In this document: one piece after another, positions 12,811 to 27,561 of the stretch
Layout of the letters: every line of letters begins with the position of its first letter
How positions within the stretch are numbered: position 1 is the stretch's first letter
NCBI RefSeq assembly: GCF_026571515.1
Contig: NW_026860174.1
Location: 1-64,000, forward strand
Source of the DNA: Ruditapes philippinarum
Taxonomy: Eukaryota
Reading direction: 5' to 3'
Length of the DNA stretch: 64,000 bases
Made by a program: the position numbers and the translations under genes
The notes under the pieces: model-generated
What the model was told of the DNA's origin: nothing
Database searches by the model: none
What the model saw: the letters and a program-made list of their open reading frames with translations, nothing else

Positions 12811-15152
12811 AGCTTTCTTATTTACGAAGAACACCCAATATGCACTCTAACCTATACATAGTAGTTTAGCTCACCTGAGCACAAATTATTGACTTAAGTT
12901 TGATTGTTAACAAACAAGGCTCTTTTCCTCTTTATTATAAGAGAACTTTGCAAATCTTATAAAATAGGCGAGCAATGCTGAGCCACCATGGCCGTCTTTG
13001 TATATTTTGATGTATAAGCAGACATATACATTTTTGTCATCATTAAAATAACTTTGCTTTCAACCTTAAAGAAACAACTAAACAATTAAACGTAATTTGT
13101 TATTGTTATAAAATGTGTCTTTCTTAGCATAAGATTTATGTGTAAAATTGAGACTGTTGCATATGCATGAAAGAAAATAACTTAATATATGCATGTAGTT
13201 GTTTTTATTTACTTTTTTGCTAAAAAAACAAATTTCAAGCATGTTAACATACTTCTCTATTTTTGCCACTAGAATCCTACATAGGCATTTGGCTGCAGAA
13301 GACGGGTATTAATTTAAAGAGTCACCACTGAGATTTTTTGACATGACCGGATTGAAAATATTTCTCTGTGATTTGTGTACCAATTAATGCAAGTCTGGAC
13401 CAATAATTTGTGTGCAAATTTTCAGATAATTTGGTCGCCCCCAGCAAAATTATTTTTATTGTGAAAAATAGCCCAGAATGAAGCGTTGAATTGCTTTCCA
13501 CTGAAATCCGCGTGGGAATCACACAAAATTGATTTTGAATTTAATTCTGAGTACAGTCTAAACCCGATTATTCGAATTGCTGGCGACTGAAAATTTACTC
13601 CGAATAATCGATGGATTCGAATAGTCGAAATCCGAATATTGTGATAGACAAAAACTACTCCATTTTGGCAAATTATAGCAAAACTATCGCTTACAACACA
13701 TTGTTTCGAGCAATTAATCGAGAAAAAATAGATATTTATGAAAAGATGCGTAAAAATAAGTTTTTATTGGTATTGAAAGCATAAATACTTGCATTTTATT
13801 CTACATTATGTATTCTTTGTTATCGCTTGCAAATTTTTCATTTTAAGTGCTTCACTTGATATTTGTAAGATTTTCAACTTTTATGTCTCATAGCAAGACG
13901 CTATTGTTACAAAAATGTCTCCATTGCATACAACAAAGCGATTTCTGGACTAATCTTTAGCTCATCTGAGCACGAATAGCACAGAGGTGTGCTTTTGTGA
14001 TTGGTATTTTGTAAATTGTTAAACTTTATATTTTGTATCAAAAGAAAAGTGTGGTTTAAAGATAAAATCAGTCTCTTATCAGCCCAAAATTTAATTTTCT
14101 AAATTTATGTGTCTAAACTGTTAAATATTTAAATATTTAAATTGCTTATCAATCCAATATTTAAACATTTTAAGTCTTAAATAAGCAATGAATCACCATT
14201 CTTTCTGCAAGTGAAAGAACTGGATCCGATCTTCCTTTCAGATTATTAATAAGAAATATTTTCCTTGCTTAATATTTAATCTAATAAATGATGATAAATG
14301 AGTAGACGCTAGAAAAAGTGAAAAGGAAATATTTGTCGAAAAAAAACTTGGTGTAAATATCAATGAGAGAAAGAAACTTCAAGAATAAAGATATTACCGT
14401 CAGAGGTTTAGCTAACCATTAAGGCATTCCCTATTTGCCAGTCTTGTTCTCGAAGATATCCCTATCCCCCCCCCCCCGCCCGAACTAACAATTTTAATTT
14501 CATGCAAGTGAAAGTTGTCGACAGGGTTGCTTTCATTGTCGGAGGCATCAAAAACACGGAGCGAGATTCGAACTTTAAAAGACGGTAAAACAACACTCGG
14601 ACCCCTGATCAAAAGAAACGATTTCCTGGCACAATAACCATAGGTTATTTTTATATTAACCGTGGTAGTAGTACACATACAAACATTCCAAAACGTTTAC
14701 AGCCATGTGATTTATGAATCGAACAAGTGAAAAGTTAAACGTTTACGGCCATGTGGATTTATGAATCGAACAAGTGAAAAGTTAAACTTACTATATTTTA
14801 TACCATGCAACATAAACACATTGCATTGTTACATGCAGTATTGCTTTCCGTGGCATTCTTAGGTATAAAATGCAAGCTTGATTTCACACCTCCATTCATC
14901 AGCTCACAAACAACCATGGAAAAATCACCCTAATACGGTAGTTATATGCCCTTCAATGATTAAGACATTACCCTTTATGTTATTGGGACACAATTTATCT
15001 CCGATAACAGAATAAGACCTTGTGTTCTTTTGGATTTGCTAAACAAAAAGGAACAGTTTTCCGTAAGAAAATGTGAAGAAGGAAACTTGGATATATTTTT
15101 GAAATCTTTTCGCTGTAATTTGAGAAGGTATCAAGGAACATCATTGCAAATA

Positions 15153-17366
15153 ATGCGTCGGTTTATATTGATTAGTTTACTATTTCATGTATATTTAACT
15201 GTACAAATATACTCCGGGCTTTTATTAGGAAATGATTGGTGTCGCGAAATGGATAACAAGTCGTTGGTGTGCAATAATAAAATACCCGAAAATATTCCAG
15301 ATGGGATAGAAAATGTTAAAATAATGAACATAGTACCAAAGGTAACGCATATAAAGAATGACAGTTTCTATGGAAACCAATGGGCACGTTTGAAAAGTCT
15401 TTGGATTGGAACGATGGATTATACAGAATCATATATACCGTGGTTAACACTATACAACAATACGTTCAGTAACCTATATGCACTGGAATCCCTTACTGTA
15501 TATATGCCAGCACTTGAACGCATTGAACGTGACGCATTTCGAGGTCTTGAAAATTTAACTGAGGTGAGTTTTATGGCGCTTGACAGAACGTCAGTGTATT
15601 ATTTATTTCTGGTTTTTGAGAACACTGAATCAATGCCAAACTTACAAACTTTTAGAGTTAATAAACTGAACATATTTTCAAAACCACCGATGACTTCAAC
15701 ATCACTGGACCGTAGGGTTTTTCAAGCTTTATCGTTGAGAAACATATCAGAAGTGCATATGACAGAATCATCTTTCGATGTCCTCGACTTCAAAGCCTCT
15801 TTGCTAGTATGCAATCAAATTCGATTTGTCAATGTTTCTCGCTCGACTATCATTAGAAATGTTAACAGAACGTCAACTCCTTGTTCGTCACTTGAAACTG
15901 TTCTCCTGACAAAGTTTCATAAGAAAAGTCAAACAACCCATCTTCATTATGAGAATGTTCGCTTAAAATGGAAGTTATATACCAAGTTTTATTATTTTAA
16001 AAAGGCAAAAAAGTTGAATATTGATTTTTGGTTCAAAGATGTTTCGACAATTAAAAACACCCATTTAACAATTGAAAGTCAAGCATTTCAACTGAAAGAG
16101 ATATCCATGCAAAATAATAAATTAAACTACATCGACTTAGTTCTTAGAACCAATATATCTGTCAACTTAGAAAAAGTTGAGCTACAAAGTAATGGTATCA
16201 GATATCTTAATGGTGGGTCATTCATATCTACGCCTTTATTGAAAACGTTGAATTTGTCGGATAATCAGTTATTCCAAATGCAAAGTCGCAACACATCGTC
16301 GTTTACGAAAGTATTCTTTTATCTAACAAAACTGCAAGTTCTTGATATTTCTTGGAATGAACTTACTTACATACCATTCAACACCTTTGACGAAAATAGT
16401 GAATTGCACGAATTATATATTAGAAACAACAATATGGGCCAAATAGCTCTTAATTCAAGCTTCACGTTGTCGATAGTTGATTTGAGGTTTAACAAAATTA
16501 GCTCCCTGAACGTAGTCAGTCGTCAATGGTTTGACGAAAATTTCAGTTTTCATTTCAATACGTCTAAGTTTGATGTCAATATCCAAGATAATCCGTTACA
16601 GTGCTCCTGCAGGAATCAAGACTTCGTGCAATGGCTTGTACACACACCGTTGATAAGAAACTCGTCCTATAAATTAGCTTGCTTTGACCACGAACATGCT
16701 GAAATAACGCCTCAGTTCAGTAATGACTTAAAGGAAGAATGTTTGCGGCCTATAATTATTAGAAACATAGCGCTAACTTCTTCAGTTGGGTTTGTTGCAG
16801 TTTCTTTACTTACATCTGCTGTTTTTGTCGTCTGCCGTCGTCACAGAAAACGAATTCTTAAAAATCGAACAATTGATGAAATAATTGCCCTAGTTCAGGA
16901 CGGAGCATATCAATTTGAATTTCCTGTGTTCGTGTCATACTGCAACGGTGATGTCGACTTGGTCATGGCACATATATATCAACCTCTAGTAAATCATTTT
17001 CGGGAAATATTTGACACACCAAGGGAGTTGGTATGTATTGGCGACCGCCATTTTACACCTGGACGTAGTATTTATCATGAAATTCATAGATGTCTGGAAA
17101 GCAGTGCAGTTATAATTACCGTTGTATCCAATGAATTTTGTCAGAGTCAATATTGTGTAAATGAACTGGAGCAGGCTTATGACTTGGGAAAGCCAATTTT
17201 GATGATTTTTGTGGACATGGTTGATGAAAATGAAATGACACCTATTATGAGACAATTATTCAAAAGGTACACGCGCGTGAATATGCGGATTATTGACGGC
17301 GAAGTTCAAATTGTGCCATGCTGGGACAGAATCTGCAGATCAATTCTCGAAATGTTGCCACGATAA
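15153..17366 (+). CDS. Toll-like receptor, single-cysteine-cluster type, intronless, ~737 aa
   Basis: The likely start is ATG 15153 (MRRFILISLLFHVYLTVQIYS, signal peptide); the ORF-track start at 15030 is a TTG. LRRNT (CREMDNKSLVCNNKIP), multiple LRRs (LEKVELQSNGI, LKTLNLSDNQL, LQVLDISWNEL), LRRCT (NPLQCSCRNQDFVQWL...C...C), TM helix (IALTSSVGFVAVSLLTSAVFVVC) followed by RRHRKR, and a TIR domain (FPVFVSY; CIGDRHFTPG BB-loop with Pro; VSNEFCQSQYCVNEL). Confidence 0.96.
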   Translation: MRRFILISLLFHVYLTVQIYSGLLLGNDWCREMDNKSLVCNNKIPENIPDGIENVKIMNIVPKVTHIKNDSFYGNQWARLKSLWIGTMDYTESYIPWLTLYNNTFSNLYALESLTVYMPALERIERDAFRGLENLTEVSFMALDRTSVYYLFLVFENTESMPNLQTFRVNKLNIFSKPPMTSTSLDRRVFQALSLRNISEVHMTESSFDVLDFKASLLVCNQIRFVNVSRSTIIRNVNRTSTPCSSLETVLLTKFHKKSQTTHLHYENVRLKWKLYTKFYYFKKAKKLNIDFWFKDVSTIKNTHLTIESQAFQLKEISMQNNKLNYIDLVLRTNISVNLEKVELQSNGIRYLNGGSFISTPLLKTLNLSDNQLFQMQSRNTSSFTKVFFYLTKLQVLDISWNELTYIPFNTFDENSELHELYIRNNNMGQIALNSSFTLSIVDLRFNKISSLNVVSRQWFDENFSFHFNTSKFDVNIQDNPLQCSCRNQDFVQWLVHTPLIRNSSYKLACFDHEHAEITPQFSNDLKEECLRPIIIRNIALTSSVGFVAVSLLTSAVFVVCRRHRKRILKNRTIDEIIALVQDGAYQFEFPVFVSYCNGDVDLVMAHIYQPLVNHFREIFDTPRELVCIGDRHFTPGRSIYHEIHRCLESSAVIITVVSNEFCQSQYCVNELEQAYDLGKPILMIFVDMVDENEMTPIMRQLFKRYTRVNMRIIDGEVQIVPCWDRICRSILEMLPR

Positions 17367-20860: not shown

Positions 20861-22576
20861 CAGGAAATCTACAGGGATCTACATTAGGTGCATTCCAGAT
20901 TTTATTATCTATTATTTATTAACTTATTTCAGTACAATCTCAAATAATCTCGCTCAATTTTGTTTACATAGGGTTTCGTTGCTGTTTGGAAGTCTACCTT
21001 TTTCAGTTTACAAAAGTCGTGATATGTGTAATTAACATAAATGTTGCTTATTATTTAATTCTATATTAAATGCCAATGGAATATTTACTCAAACAAGACC
21101 GGGTATTATGTGTAAGCTTTTATATATAGTGAAATTTCATTTCATTTATTCACGAGATGAAAAAAAAGATAAAACAATCCTACACAATAAAACAACGACA
21201 CCTTTTTTTTACTAATGCGATACTGCGTTTTTAAACCATCATCTTAAACATTAAAACCCTCTATCCAAGATTTCAGACAACATTTTCCAATTTAGCCGTA
21301 ACGATCAGTACAGTAATGTAAATGAGATGGCAATTCAGATATTAAGAACACTCATAAAAGAAAGCTTGCTTTGTTCAATAAAATAAATTATTTCAAACAT
21401 TCTTTACATTTACATAGTTTTTATATTGGCTTTTTTCACATTGAATCTCGTGGAGTATAATTTATATATTATTTTCAGTGACAGATTTTGATTTTTTTTC
21501 TAAATTTTAAAAATTGTACCGAACCTACCGCTTGCGTTTATATTGTGATTGGTTTTGTGAACATACATTTGATTTACATATTAAAATGGGACATTTATTT
21601 TAGTATTGATACAAACAAAAAATATGACTGTTGTCAGTTGATAGCAAGTTCTACAAATAGATCTTATAATGTCTGGATTTACATTTTATCTGTTAACATG
21701 ATTATGATTAAATGTGAGGAAGCACACTTGGACAAATGCAATAAACCTCTTATTATATTTCTCTTACTATGTACGATTATATAATTGTATATAGCAATGC
21801 TATACCAGTTGTATGCATAATACTAATACCGTAGTCAACGTATTTTCGACTCTGGCTTATAAATACAGAAGTAAATCAAAAGTAATTATGTGGCATAAAA
21901 TCATTTTATTAAATGGTCATGTATTCGAGTAAAGTTTCAACGAATGTTTGACTAATTTTATCAAAGTACTAATTAAAAACGGAAAATATATACAATGTAG
22001 TTTAATTTGTTTCGAAAACATTTTCCAAGCTTACAAATATTTATCACCAACAATTTAGTTCAACTGAAACATCAAGTACGATTTTACATTAATATGTAAT
22101 ATAGTGAAGAATGTTTAAAACAGGATAATGCATTTTCTATTTTGGGTGTTTATTTAGAAAAAAGCTTTTCGACGTTTGCGCACTGAGACGGTCATTTAGT
22201 AGTTTAAGTCCTTTATCGACGAAGGATATGTTGTGCTGTTGTTTTGTTTTTGTTTGTTTGTTTTTGTTTTTTTAAATTATCAAGATTGTTCTTTATTTTG
22301 ATGTATTGGTATTCTACATTTTTATTATCTTCTTTGCAGATGGAAAATATCAAAGTCTGATATGAATAACAAATGAATGTGCTAGTGTGAGTCTTGAATG
22401 TGCTCTCAAAATAGCACTCAAACAGTTTTAAATTATCACACTGCTGCGTTGTAACATGCTTGGTGATATCACCTATACTTTTTCGTTGGGTTGTTGTTGT
22501 TGTTATTTATCTTTTTTTGAAGGGGAAATTAGTTGTGGGGGAGTCAAAGCTAAGGTCCAGAAAGTCTTGATGTTAT

Positions 22577-22731
22577 CACAGGAGCTTGAAATTCTATCAA
22601 TAATCGCTCAAAAGTCCGATCTAAAAAAAAAATCCATACCTATATATAAAAAAAATATTTTATATATAGGTATGGATTTTTTTTTAGATCGGACTTTTGA
22701 GCGATTATTGATAGAATTTGAAGCTCCTGTG
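22577..22731. mobile_element. 155-bp foldback MITE with 7-bp TSD (P-element/Galileo-like termini CA...TG)
   Basis: An almost perfect palindrome CACAGGAGCTTGAAATTCTATCAATAATCGCTCAAAAGTCCGATC...GATCGGACTTTTGAGCGATTATTGATAGAATTTGAAGCTCCTGTG. ATGTTAT is duplicated at 22570-22576 and 22732-22738. Confidence 0.88.
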
Positions 22732-23278
22732 ATGTTATGTTCTAAGATAGTTTAATGACATTGAACTCTTGATATTGAACTTTTTATTGACATGTATCAA
22801 TTTTTTTTTTGTTAAATAAAACACCTAATTCATTGATTTAAACTAAACCCCATAGTAAGTAATTTATCAAACTGTAAACAATGTAGAACACATATTATAT
22901 TTTCTACAATGCAATTCAATATTGCATGTGTTGGGTTCTTTTTGGCTAATTTGTACAATATAATTCAATAAGTAAGAAATATAGTGAAAATAAAAGGGAA
23001 ATAACTGGAATTCCAGGTTTGATAATATGTCCGGTTTCAAATAATACCCAGTTAAGTGAATTATTTTGTACAAAAAAGCCAAAAAAGATCATAACCCATA
23101 AGTCTTGCATATTAAAGGTTTTTAAAAATAACACAAGTAACAGTTTATGAAAAAAGCGTTTATTAAAAATATAACTAGAGACGGTACTTATATTACAAAG
23201 CTGGATAGATATGGCACACAATCAGAAATGCAAGCTGAACATTGTGAGTGGCATGCAAAAAAATCCTCGTGAAATGTT

Positions 23279-25835
23279 TTATTTCTTGTATTTTGAATCC
23301 AATCCTTTGACGCGATATTTATTCGGATCTCCTCCGTTCCGTCCATGTCTGTTTGCTTCTTGATCAGCGTCTCTATCAGCACTACTGTCACCCTTGAGGG
23401 CACCGTAAACTTCGCGAAGATCACTGAAAATATAAATAATTTGTCCGTAAAATACAAATATTTACTTGAATGAAATCTAAATTAAAGTGTGTGTGTTTGT
23501 TTCCCCAGCGAATCTTTGGCTTGCATCCTTTAGAGCTCTCTCTAATAAGTAATTACGTGACAAATGATGATGTGTTAATTTATACGTTACTTCCTCATTT
23601 TTTTCTCACACAATAATTGACTTTCTTTGCTTTAAGATATGGGAGCTTAAATCAACAAGACAGTTAAAACATATTTTATCTAAATGTAAATGTTTATTTT
23701 TAATACTAATTGGTATACTACATTACTACACGTGGTCCAATTGTAAATTGAAGATGAGTTAAAATATACATGTATATTGTTTTAATATAAAGCTTGTGAT
23801 GAACCTACCAAAATTCAATATTAAAAACAAAATTAAGAACCGTTTACATTAAAAAAGGAATATTTTTCTTTTTGACGCGCCTGTTAATAGTACACTATTT
23901 TGTTAAACTCAAATGACGCCAAGTTGTATGGAACACAAAATACTACTTTGTTTACATCTTATTACTATGATACTTTTTGTCAATTTATTTCATATTTATA
24001 GCTATAATATTCAGATAAATCCCAAAAACCATGGTTTAAAAATTATATAATTCACGATTGCCCTTTCTAAAGAAGTAAGATTTATTTGTTTCACAGATAA
24101 AATGTCTCACCATTCCAAACATGCCGCGCATCGGATCGCGTTCGTACCGCAAATACATGTATTACGATCGCACATTGTTAACCTATTTTAAGTTTTATAG
24201 AATACAAACTTGATACCTGATAACTCTTGCTGCATGTCGTCCGCCAGTTCCATGTTGTGCGGCATCATAATTTCCCCTTGAGTGAAAATACTTGTCAGCA
24301 CCTATCGTGTTTGCTTCTTTCATGTCTCTGCAATAAATAAAATCATAGATGTATTTAAAGGTCATATTCTGTCATATAGCATATATACCTTTCCCGTTTT
24401 CTGGGCCATTTGTTTGGCGTTTGGCTGTGTACCTACTTATTAGGCGTAGTTAGTTTTCTACATCCATCAGTCACATTCGTGTCACGCAGATGGTGGTAAT
24501 GCATCTAATTAAAATACTATTCTATCGAAATGTCGCTACATTCAGGCCATCTTCAACATAGCCTATAGGAAAATATATCTGTGAATCAATGGACCTTCGT
24601 GTCTGAGTTATTAAGGTCACTGATAACTTGCGCCGAGCCCCTGTGGGTTTGAACAGGGACTTTAGGTTCTATAATTTGAAGAAGCTATCCTGCAGTCTTA
24701 TTGAATCAGTGGTTCTACTCAGGTACCCGTTCGTGCCTGAAATAATGCACTGATGGTCTCCTTAGGTCTTCCTCCACATTAAATGCTAGAAAGGTGCAAT
24801 ATAATCTTTACAGTGTCGGTTAGACTTAAAATCCCACAAGCCTGTGACTCTGAAACCTTGCAAAAAAACATATAATGCCGAGCGAAAAACATAAAGTCGT
24901 ACAGCGCATACTTTTGCGTTGACTCTAACATTCGTGTACGGTTTTGACACAGTCATTTTCTCTCTCCGAAATCATATGTTTGAATTTTCAAATCCTGATA
25001 TATACATTTTTGAGCATTTTATTGAATGGCCCTTTGAAAATATGAGTGCCATTTTAAAGTCACTTTATGCCGCTAATATATAAACACATGTATTCTTTAC
25101 TCTCAGACCCTCATATTTATGGTTTTGAATAGCACCGAGAACTCGTAAAAATATATCTTCTTTTACCTGAAAAAATTACGCATAGAGAAATTGAGGTCTC
25201 TCTCCATCAGTAAAGATAATCACCAATCTACGTTTACATTGTCAATGACTGGAAAGCAGACAGTAAAACAAACTTAAACTATATGCTGCTTATAATTAGA
25301 AATAAACATAACGATAAAAAACAAATTTTCCAATAAAATACTAAAACAGGTTGTATAAATATAAGTAACTGTAAGAACAAACGAAATATTACTTGTATGC
25401 CTTGAGCATAGCTTTCGCTCCGTTGTTCAACCCAGAAACGTAATCGCTGGCCTTATATTTTACTTCCTTCGCCTTATCTTTTACTTTGGAGGCGTACTCG
25501 CTCGCTTTATTCTTTACCTCTTTCGCTTTATCCTTTGCAGTAGAAACATATTCTTTTGCCTTATTTTTCACCTCATGTGCCCTATCCTTTACTTTGGAGA
25601 CGTACTCGCTCGCCTTATTCTTTATCTCTCTCGCTTTATCCTTTGCCCCGGAAACGAAATTGTTCACTTTATTCTTTACCCCGGAACCGTTATTACTCCC
25701 ACTGTTCGTACTACTGCCTCTGCTGCTGCTGCTGCTGCTACGACGGCTTCCTCCCCACCAGGCTTCTGACTCCCCGATAACAACCAACAAAGCCACGAAG
25801 AGCAGCAACACGCTCGCTTTGCCGATTACCCTCAT
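23279..25835 (-). CDS. SAA: Serum amyloid A family protein, copy 1, with N-terminal 5 x 18-aa amphipathic repeat expansion (~232 aa)
   Basis: Exons (minus strand) 25835-25393, 24327-24217 (111 nt) and 23423-23279 (145 nt); GT-AG, both introns phase 2. Signal peptide [25 protein letters not shown]. Core [47 protein letters not shown]...[29 protein letters not shown] carries the SAA signatures DKYFHxRGN and ANxxGRxGxDPN. Confidence 0.95.
24600..24836 (+). mobile_element. Decayed tRNA-derived SINE in intron 1 of SAA copy 1
   Basis: The central domain GTGGTTCTACTCAGGTACCCGTTCGTGCCTGAAATAATGCAC...GGTCTTCCTCCAC is shared with the younger copy at 56201-56432. Confidence 0.7.
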
Positions 25836-27561
25836 TCTTATGAACGTTTTCTAATTTCTAGTGATCGTGTAAACGTCAAGAAATCAAAATGAACAGTGAC
25901 AGTTGATTTGCTTATATTGAGCTATATATTTGTTTGTGCGCGCACACGTGTAACTGGCGATAAGGAAAACAGTTTAAGAAGGCTTGAAATTACAATTAAG
26001 CATTTTCTATACATGTACGTCCAATCAAGTTTGTTATTCTTAATTTACTGACTTGTTGTGCAAGATATGTACTTTAAACTTCCTAATCCAGACAATGTTT
26101 CTTAAAATCTGATTTATCCTTATAGCACAAAATAAAACCAATAAAAACTGCACACGGAGATATACATTAACGTAGAAGAGAGCATTTACTGATAGAATCA
26201 CGGGAGCAGACACCGTTATTGCGCGTTTTTTTCAATATTCGTGACTCGGGGCGTCCTATTACTGAAATGACGAGACCTGGTTATTTCAATGTCTATTGAC
26301 ATAGCACTAGGAAGGGGAAAGCCTGACAAAATGCTTTATAATTAAAAACACCAGAAAACAAAAGGTATAATTAATGAATTGTTAGACATTTTACACACAA
26401 AGTTACTGGTACCTTTCTTTATTTCCCTTTTTTATAAGTTGTATACTGTATCAATGTGAAAAATGCAAAAGAACAAGTAACTATAGTACTTAACAATGCT
26501 ATGAAACAGATAACACTATGTCAGTAAACATTAAAATAGATGTTTCCAATGCACATTGTTTCGCTTACCTATTGAACTTTGGTAGATATATCCTCCAAAT
26601 TTTGATTTTGTTGATTTTGAGATATTTTCTGAAGTCTGTTAGATATAGAAAGTGAGACGTTCAAAAGTCTGAGAACAATTTAACATCTCCAGGTCTGCTC
26701 CAAACTGTATGCTCCTGTTTTAAATTTTGAAAACTCAGTAACAGGGTCCAGTACTGACTTTATTTAAAAGTGTAAGTTGTTGAAGCCATTTTATAACAGA
26801 CTGGTACTACATGCACATCTGATAAAAATATTTATTTTAGCTTATTGTAACATTTCATCTCCTTACTAAACTTGAAACCACGGCTAAAACCTTGCTGCAG
26901 TGCACGATTTTATAGCCTAGCATGGGTTTGTAAATTGTTTTTTTTTATTTTTTATTTTATTTCGTCTACGTCAACTAAAATTAATGTTAATTTCAAATTA
27001 TTCATAAATCATTAGTAATGAAGATTCCTCATGAAATAATTTTAAAATCAAAGCACACTTGATGAGTGTTACTTTAAATTTGACCGTGATGCTTCTTCCT
27101 TGTAGTCAAGTCGACCTCATCATATTGGTGGTCTTTAACGAGGAAGTTGATATGTTGAAAGCTTTCCATGCAATTGGCTACTTATGAGAATGATGCAAAT
27201 AGAGGTTGTAAAATGAAATGCTCTTTCATGTTTTAGATTTCATGTTTTAGATAAAACAAACCTAAAATAGAGAAAAACGAAAACCTTAAAGAATGTCCAA
27301 AGTAAGTAATGGGAACAAATTAAGTAATTTTTGTTTGATAAATATGATATTTTTCAATTCCATAGTTTAAATATAGGAGTCGTTTTGGCTTATGTATACC
27401 ATATATTTCACTTGTAAATGAACGTTGTACAACAGTATATTACAATTTATGTTTCATTAAAAAGCGTTTATTACAGAGTTGGCAAAATATGTCACTATCA
27501 AAACATACGAGTAAACATTGCATATTTCGTAAGTGGGTAGCAAAAACGCGTTTTGGATGTT

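Follow-up and report, generated by a model that had tools for sequence, protein, structure and literature searches.

A serum amyloid A gene of Ruditapes philippinarum with five tandem 18-residue repeats derived from its first helix

The SAA Locus and the Transcript of SAA Copy 1

The window analyzed here, i.e., the whole stretch of 64,000 nucleotides at positions 1 to 64,000 of the Ruditapes philippinarum contig NW_026860174.1 (assembly GCF_026571515.1), harbors five genes of the serum amyloid A (SAA) family, all located on the minus strand. Of the eleven SAA genes in the 1.41-Gb assembly, eight share this contig, whereas the other three lie on a second one. SAA copy 5 of the window corresponds to the protein named serum amyloid A-3-like of R. 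philippinarum by NCBI, and the annotated SAAs of the contig are 151–168 aa long. SAA copy 1, the subject of the present analysis, carries in its exon 1 an array of tandem 54-bp units that arose from helix 1 of SAA itself. The repeat-bearing SAA copy 1 was not returned by the protein searches (lengths of 81–457 aa, 5.8 billion proteins).

The open reading frame (ORF) containing the repeats comprises 148 codons on the minus strand; it opens with the ATG at 25835 and closes at the GT donor at 25392. Together with two further exons, it forms a coding sequence (CDS) of 443 + 111 + 145 = 699 nt, encoding 232 aa in three exons, which agrees with the length of ∼232 aa given by an earlier first-pass annotation of this DNA. 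The transcript evidence consisted of contigs assembled from X1 and X2, two public runs on this species that belong to two studies and were presumed to be RNA. Contigs of both runs contained the junctions 25393→24327, as predicted by that annotation, and 24217→23423, each flanked by GT..AG on the minus strand; exon 2 thus ends at 24217, with its donor GT at 24216–24215. The stretch 25393–25707 covering the array was spanned without a gap by one contig per run, and the depth in X1 was 207 across the array vs. ∼9 across the intron. Since the contigs of X1 and X2 carry both junctions and cover the array gap-free, splicing joins the repeat exon to the SAA core. Had the runs been DNA, the spliced form would have required a retrocopy, and no retrocopy was found in the 1.41-Gb assembly, where the array is unique. 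The sequence GTAAAG at the unit starts was considered as an alternative donor and rejected, as the contigs pass straight through the array and splicing at the first of these sites would disrupt the reading frame. Reads of a further run, X21, on exon 2 were all oriented with the first mate on the plus strand, compatible with RNA from the minus strand and a stranded library.

The product of SAA copy 1 is predicted to be secreted. The cleavage site of the signal peptide was called by eye from the -3/-1 rule and from homologous bivalve SAAs with a mature "WWG" end. The Ser-rich linker that follows contains a CTG/CAG triplet run at 25720–25739. A Ser-rich linker of variable length is also present in other bivalve SAAs, and the lengths of the Ser/Gly linkers differ between the SAA copies of the window. 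Another SAA of R. philippinarum, P0294 (280 aa), was observed to have a linker of ∼150 residues made of Ser/Thr/Ile-rich short repeats together with a single helix 1, representing a second, different expansion of exon 1 within the SAA family of this clam. The coordinates of the features of SAA copy 1 and the evidence for each are summarized in Table 1.

Table 1. Features of SAA copy 1 and its proximal upstream region (positions in the window)
Feature	Position	Strand	Evidence
Proximal upstream region, probable 5′ untranslated region (UTR), with a TATA-like motif near 25925	25836..25940	-	Alignment of five SAA upstream regions; X1 and X2 contigs run through
Start codon and signal peptide (residues 1–25; predicted cleavage after Ser-Glu-Ala)	25761..25835	-	ORF; aligns with signal peptides of 30 SAAs; AlphaFold2 helix at residues 3–23
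Trp-Trp-Gly mature start and Ser-rich low-complexity linker (residues 26–52)	25680..25760	-	AlphaFold2 predicted local distance difference test (pLDDT) 47–55, without secondary structure
Units U1–U5, five in-frame 54-bp (18-aa) tandem repeats (residues 53–142)	25410..25679	-	TRF, unit table, homology to paralog helix 1, helical wheel, AlphaFold2 helix with pLDDT 93–95
Last 17 nt of exon 1 (helix 1 continues for six more residues; ends in phase 2)	25393..25409	-	Joint at 25393 in X1 and X2 contigs
Intron 1, 1065 nt, GT..AG	24328..25392	-	Joint 24327→25393, CT..AC on the plus strand; X1 depth ∼9 vs. 207 in the exon
Exon 2 (end of helix 1 and helix 2 of the SAA core)	24217..24327	-	PF00277 E 5e-15, 56 bits, profile positions 20–55; joints on both sides
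Intron 2, 793 nt, GT..AG	23424..24216	-	Joint 23423→24217 in contigs: X1 depth 107; X2 depth 20, shorter side 111 nt
Exon 3, coding part (helices 3–4 and C-terminal tail; stop TAA at 23281–23279)	23279..23423	-	PF00277 E 2e-11, 45 bits, profile positions 59–102

The exons of SAA copy 1 were searched one at a time. Against the SAA profile PF00277 (cut-off of 30.8 bits), exon 2 scored 56.1 bits over profile positions 20–55 and exon 3 scored 44.7 bits over positions 59–102, in support of the assignment of the gene to SAA made in the first-pass annotation; in a profile scan of the whole assembly, the locus gave 55.5 and 45.5 bits. The core blocks invariant in the family, KYFH..RGN..DAA..GG..AA and ADQ.AN..GR.G, were both found in SAA copy 1. 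At the columns with ≥90% agreement among 30 SAAs, it deviated at four only, namely, S77A, A83S, P142V, and P146D. The last two lie in the tail motif Tyr-Arg-Pro-x-Gly-Leu-Pro, which is not kept as both prolines are replaced (P to V and P to D), the first of these being invariant in 30/30 SAA sequences. The change in the tail is a derived feature of this copy and no reason to exclude it from the SAA family. The base at 23296 was seen to differ from the reference in all four runs, changing the residue after the lost proline from Ser to Pro (the Pro of the other allele is one position later), and the reference may hold the rarer allele here.

Origin and Age of the Repeat Array

The array was read exactly as described beforehand, i.e., as five units of 18 residues, each encoded by 54 bp, from 25679 to 25410 on the minus strand. 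TRF detected a period of 54 (68% matches, 3.8 copies) as well as a period of 108 (80–86% matches). The nucleotide identity between units in register ranged from 59 to 83%; the closest pairs were U2/U4 (83%) and U1/U3 (72%), and each of U1–U4 was 59–63% identical to U5. As U2/U4 and U1/U3 are the closest pairs, the array is indicated to be a 108-bp higher-order repeat followed by U5. The array probably grew by a single duplication of the ancestral segment, divergence of the resulting pair into a two-unit block, and a duplication of this 108-bp block.

The relation of the units to SAA helix 1 was evaluated at the DNA level. U5 and the remainder of exon 1 after it are clearly homologous to the single helix-1 DNA of the paralog SAA copy 5, which U5 matched at 39/54 positions; U5 is the ancestral helix-1 copy. 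U1–U4 matched the same DNA in register at 29–32/54 positions vs. 17–19 in codon-shuffled controls. For all units, the means of the shuffled controls were 16–19/54 (standard deviation of ∼3.5), and the observed value was reached by ≤0.1% of the shuffles. The proposal that the repeats derive from SAA helix 1 thus holds for every unit in this comparison (29–39/54 vs. 16–19), and the repeats are descendants of that helix. Capture of the repeats from a bacterial DUF883 or an LEA-like (late embryogenesis abundant) gene was considered and rejected, since all units show in-register homology with the helix-1 DNA of the paralog. The paralog aligned to residues 8–104 of mouse SAA3 with an E-value of 7e-32, and through this alignment, the 18-residue unit corresponds to positions ∼-1 to 16 in vertebrate SAA, at the N-terminal end of helix 1. 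This helix comprises residues 1–27 in the human protein, and vertebrate SAA is an exchangeable apolipoprotein of high-density lipoprotein (PMC9268363).

Comparison of U1U2 with U3U4 gave 0.89 synonymous substitutions per site (dS) and 0.17 nonsynonymous substitutions per site (dN), with a ratio of 0.19. For exon 2 between paralogs, dS was 0.43–1.31 and dN/dS was 0.12–0.33. By these values, the age of the array is about that of the split between the paralogs, and the array is constrained to a degree similar to the SAA core, indicative of purifying selection. The second allele, as represented by the contigs, has five units as well. It differs from the reference at nine positions in the array, of which six are synonymous and three are conservative or compatible with the pattern of the repeat: Arg is replaced by Lys, Thr (at an interface position) by Ile, and Tyr by Asn, the residue that the other units have there.

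Helix Geometry and Structural Modeling

Hydrophobic residues were located at positions 1, 5, 8/9, 12, and 16 of the unit, as noted earlier, and the resulting apolar spacing of 4-3-4-4-3 (an 18-residue, 7+11 periodicity) was maintained across 90 residues. All five units keep one face because 18 residues amount to exactly five helical turns. On a helical wheel of the five units drawn at 100 degrees per residue, the arc from 340 to 80 degrees was occupied by F/Y, V/I, A/V/L, A, A, and V, with invariant or near-invariant Lys at 100, 120, 300, and 320 degrees and Asp/Glu at 220–260 degrees. The coherent moment summed over the 90 residues peaked at exactly 100.0 degrees with a z-score of 5.9 relative to composition-matched shuffles, bearing out the earlier claim that the amphipathic face runs in register through the whole array. 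An arrangement of interfacial Lys and opposite Asp/Glu is termed class A in Segrest's classification. The helix of the array shows this class A amphipathic layout with a narrow Val/Ala/Tyr stripe, as in exchangeable apolipoproteins.

The array carries a net charge of +13 over its 90 residues, with ∼40% charged residues, a mean hydrophobicity of -0.4, and no hydrophobic run. The charge, the hydrophobicity, and the lack of a hydrophobic run weaken the suggestion in the first-pass annotation that the amyloidogenic segment of SAA had been multiplied.

Structure prediction with AlphaFold2 was carried out on exon 1 alone without an alignment. It gave one uninterrupted helix across residues 49–147 with a pLDDT of 93–95 and a disordered linker, in accordance with the continuous helix that had been anticipated. 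An ordinary paralog, P0001, predicted with 30 homologs (pLDDT of 86), showed helices at residues 41–72, 78–90, 93–113, and 118–132, i.e., a helix 1 of 32 residues followed by three other SAA helices, as expected for the four-helix bundle. A two-copy complex prediction of residues 49–148 gave a score of 0.01; as controls were not run, it was used neither for nor against binding.

Comparison With Other SAAs and With Helical Repeat Proteins

Acute-phase SAAs of bivalves have reportedly been described by Qu et al. in 2014 for Crassostrea hongkongensis and by Rosani et al. in 2016 for Mytilus and Crassostrea (as cited in PMC8059625). SAA copy 1 resembles bivalve SAAs in its three-exon gene, its signal peptide, a core with nearly all invariant residues, and its place in a tandem gene array, and the "WWG" and Ser-rich N-terminus is common to it and to SAAs of Saccostrea, Mercenaria, and other Ruditapes. 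It deviates from them in the length of helix 1 (∼105 residues vs. ∼27–32), in the length of the protein (232 aa vs. 121–168 aa), and in the replaced prolines of the tail.

Lengthening of the cationic amphipathic N-terminal part of helix 1 was also found in SAAs of Saccostrea and Branchiostoma. The Saccostrea SAA-5-like proteins P0105, P0108, and P0109 have a cationic amphipathic N-terminal helix of 46 aa, with ∼20–25 extra residues, and the Branchiostoma SAAs P0114 and P0272 contain three tandem 11-aa repeats, likewise cationic and amphipathic, at the N-terminal part of helix 1. The amphipathic moments of these extensions had z-scores of 3.3–3.9. Unlike the clam SAA, in which 72 residues have been added, these proteins have gained only ∼20–25 residues, and their unit is 11 aa or not clearly defined. 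SAA copy 1 has the largest helix-1 extension among the SAAs compared. Because the units of SAA copy 1 share homology with helix 1 of this clam itself, the lengthening in the clam is independent of that in oyster and amphioxus. Taken with the expanded linker of P0294, exon 1 of invertebrate SAAs is a recurrent site of repeat growth. Long SAA entries in the databases (fish, Pecten, mammal, and spider; 200–440 aa) were examined as parallels and set aside, being mostly fused tandem genes or incorrect gene models. The literature on SAA in clam, bivalve, mollusc, and amphioxus yielded no description of repeat-bearing SAAs of clam, oyster, or amphioxus. The earlier statement that no described SAA with such an architecture was known stands to the extent that no paper was found, and its implication of uniqueness is weakened by the 46-aa helix of Saccostrea and the three 11-aa repeats of Branchiostoma.

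Searches with the repeat region retrieved proteins of other kinds. HMMER analysis against 1.84 billion representatives gave 92 matches at E ≤0.001, none of which contained an SAA domain. They were bacterial ElaB/YqjD-type proteins and LEA-like KDKA repeat proteins, several with an 18-residue period. Among the Pfam families, DUF883 (PF05957, cut-off of 25.4) reached 27.2 bits with exon 1 and 29.4 bits with the repeat region, the match consisting of 30 residues of low-complexity helix. YtxH (PF12732) at 31.7 bits was sub-threshold, and the LEA families (PF02987, PF03760) remained below their cut-offs (LEA_1 at 17.8–19.7 bits vs. 25; LEA_4 at 10.7–13.2 bits vs. 51.1). The apolipoprotein profiles were also below cut-off, with PF07464 (ApoLp-III) at 32.4 bits vs. 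36.3 and PF01442 (Apolipoprotein A1/A4/E) at 22 bits vs. 90. The apolipoprotein- or LEA-like resemblance remarked upon in the first-pass annotation was thus recovered, as sub-threshold matches to ApoLp-III, Apolipoprotein A1/A4/E, YtxH, and LEA_1 and as a match to DUF883 just above the cut-off. A PDB sequence search with the repeat region gave nothing better than an E-value of 0.01; the matches were designed helical proteins, with ApoC-I, ApoA-I, ApoE, and SHERP at 0.4–0.9. In NCBIfam, only far-sub-threshold matches to long-helix proteins were obtained, and the ESM Atlas provided no usable look-alike of exon 1.

The ElaB/YqjD/DUF883, YtxH, and LEA-type proteins share with SAA copy 1 the KDKA-type amphipathic repeats, in several cases with a period of 18 aa. 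They differ from it in that SAA copy 1 is a spliced eukaryotic gene whose repeats arose in situ from SAA helix 1; the bacterial proteins P0002, P0015, and P0041 end in a hydrophobic anchor, whereas the repeats of SAA copy 1 run into the spliced SAA core. The likeness is therefore read as convergence in a low-complexity helical pattern. With the exchangeable apolipoproteins (apoA-I/A-IV/E and insect apolipophorin-III), SAA copy 1 shares amphipathic helical tandem repeats that arose by internal duplication, Lys at the interface of the polar and non-polar faces, and acidic residues in the middle of the polar face. In contrast to these proteins, the clam array has a period of 18 aa rather than 11/22, is not punctuated by prolines, and has a narrower apolar face of small residues. 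SAA copy 1 and the exchangeable apolipoproteins would thus work alike without sharing ancestry.

Proposed Function and Alternative Explanations

SAA copy 1 is probably a secreted SAA that has retained its core and in which an elongated class A helix binds with high avidity to lipid or to anionic membrane surfaces. The structural part of this interpretation, namely, an elongated class A helix on an SAA, is considered very likely. The lipid- or membrane-binding or immune role is putative, as are the antimicrobial and scaffolding activities put forward in the first-pass annotation. Tandem duplication of its first 18 residues lengthened helix 1 from ∼32 to ∼105 residues. In the proposed mechanism, the long cationic helix would lie flat against surfaces of lipid or anionic membrane, e.g., hemolymph lipoprotein or microbial envelopes, and its avidity for the surface would be far above that of a single SAA helix 1, with the conserved SAA core staying attached. 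A more far-reaching version, which is regarded as doubtful, is that the clam independently made an apolipoprotein-like membrane-targeting effector from SAA, i.e., a straight cationic class A helix of ∼15 nm with high avidity for flat anionic surfaces such as bacterial envelopes and large lipoproteins. An unspecified SAA of R. philippinarum was found to be up-regulated in hemocytes after Vibrio challenge (PMC4234419).

Several observations weigh against this interpretation. The non-polar face of the array consists mostly of Ala and Val and is, at the mean hydrophobicity given above, weaker than that of typical membrane-lytic peptides; the low hydrophobicity is nearer to that of LEA-like or ElaB-like hydrophilic helices. 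AlphaFold2 assigns a helical structure to many sequences without order in solution, and repeats of the apolipoprotein/LEA type are often disordered before binding. With the loss of both conserved tail prolines, the core of SAA copy 1 may behave unlike that of a standard SAA. The dN/dS of the array rests on ∼21 synonymous sites, and the identity of X1 and X2 as RNA runs was only guessed. Expression was modest, the depth in X2 being 14–20 for SAA copy 1 vs. ∼7000 for a contig derived from a paralog (at a shared place in exon 3). The RNA runs with raw reads, X21 and X23, showed few exon reads and no junction reaching the listing threshold, although these runs are shallow and neutral to the contig evidence.

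The long helix could alternatively serve in oligomerization or as a spacer, forming a straight coiled-coil bundle or stalk with an unsupercoiled hydrophobic stripe, which would group several SAA cores or hold the Trp-Trp/Ser-rich N-terminus off the core. The 4-3-4-4-3 apolar spacing over 90 residues and the unbroken predicted helix would suit such an element, and vertebrate SAA is oligomeric in crystals (entries 4ip8 and 4q5g). However, the core positions are mostly Ala/Val/Tyr and not Leu/Ile, the net charge disfavors self-association, and a stripe flanked by Lys with acidic residues opposite is the apolipoprotein class A pattern and not the e/g pattern of a coiled coil; a stalk is accordingly thought unlikely. 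It is quite unlikely that the array is a neutral expansion in a redundant family member, with a repeat-prone exon 1 and a product that adds nothing to the other ten SAAs. The frame and the amphipathic register have been kept at a dS of ∼0.9 with a dN/dS of ∼0.2, near the value of the SAA core, the second allele has the same number of units with six synonymous vs. three mild nonsynonymous changes, and the fact that oysters and amphioxus have independently extended the N-terminal helix suggests an advantage gained repeatedly. Such neutrality would nevertheless account for the plasticity of exon 1, as seen in the varying linker lengths and in the other clam SAA with its ∼150-aa Ser/Thr/Ile-rich linker, for the expression far below that of a paralog in X2, and for the lost tail prolines.

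The repeat region might also act as an LEA-like or ElaB/YtxH-like disordered hydrophilic protectant, a "molecular shield" that would help an intertidal clam to withstand desiccation, freezing, or osmotic stress. This explanation draws on the Pfam scores (DUF883 at 29.4 with a cut-off of 25.4, YtxH at 31.7, LEA_1 at 19.7, and a weak LEA_4), on the KDKA-type repeat proteins among the 92 HMMER matches, several with the 18-aa period, and on the low mean hydrophobicity. It is very unlikely in view of the signal peptide, the intact SAA core, and the location in an immune-type SAA array beside a TLR gene (described below); moreover, the repeats demonstrably arose from SAA helix 1, so that the resemblance to LEA/ElaB is convergent, and most characterized LEA proteins are intracellular.

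SAA is among the most conserved acute-phase proteins of animals, and its primary function is debated, with lipid transport, opsonization, antimicrobial activity, and retinol binding having been proposed. A gene in which the lipid-binding helix is multiplied and the core is kept, accompanied by single-helix paralogs in the same array, offers a ready comparison for the role of helix 1. It also represents an apolipoprotein-like repeat architecture formed by tandem duplication from a known ancestral segment, with the steps still readable in the DNA. SAA copy 1 is an extreme form of a trend that is milder in the SAAs of oyster and amphioxus. If the membrane-targeting effector proves to be true, helix-1 lengthening would, together with the oyster and amphioxus extensions, be a recurrent route to new function in invertebrate SAAs, and SAA copy 1 would illustrate, in an extant gene, the origin of exchangeable apolipoproteins through internal duplication. 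As the gene appears to be absent from the public protein sets searched, surveys of immune genes in this commercially important clam would overlook it.

Upstream Region and Neighboring Features

About 100 bp upstream of the start codon are kept in all five SAA copies of the window, whereas the sequence farther upstream is not. The conserved stretch probably represents the 5′ UTR together with the core promoter. In the 64-kb window, 0 matches to the strict NF-kB consensus were obtained vs. 1.1 expected by chance.

Within intron 1, RNA reads and contigs were very abundant on a 40-nt core at 24710–24749, the depth being in the thousands in both X1 and X2 and ∼100 on each strand in X21. The reads on this core have flanks that are unmatched in the window, so that it is a fragment of an abundant transcript or repeat located elsewhere; no Rfam family matched this high-depth piece of the intron.

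A TLR-type ORF (LRR and TIR domain) of 778 codons at 15030–17366 on the plus strand is arranged tail-to-tail with SAA copy 1, and its end lies ∼5.9 kb from the SAA stop codon. Between the two, at 22575–22733 and ∼550 bp downstream of that stop codon, a near-perfect hairpin was observed with arms of 57 nt (98% complementary) enclosing a perfect inverted repeat of 28 nt; it looks like a palindromic element of the miniature inverted-repeat transposable element (MITE) type.

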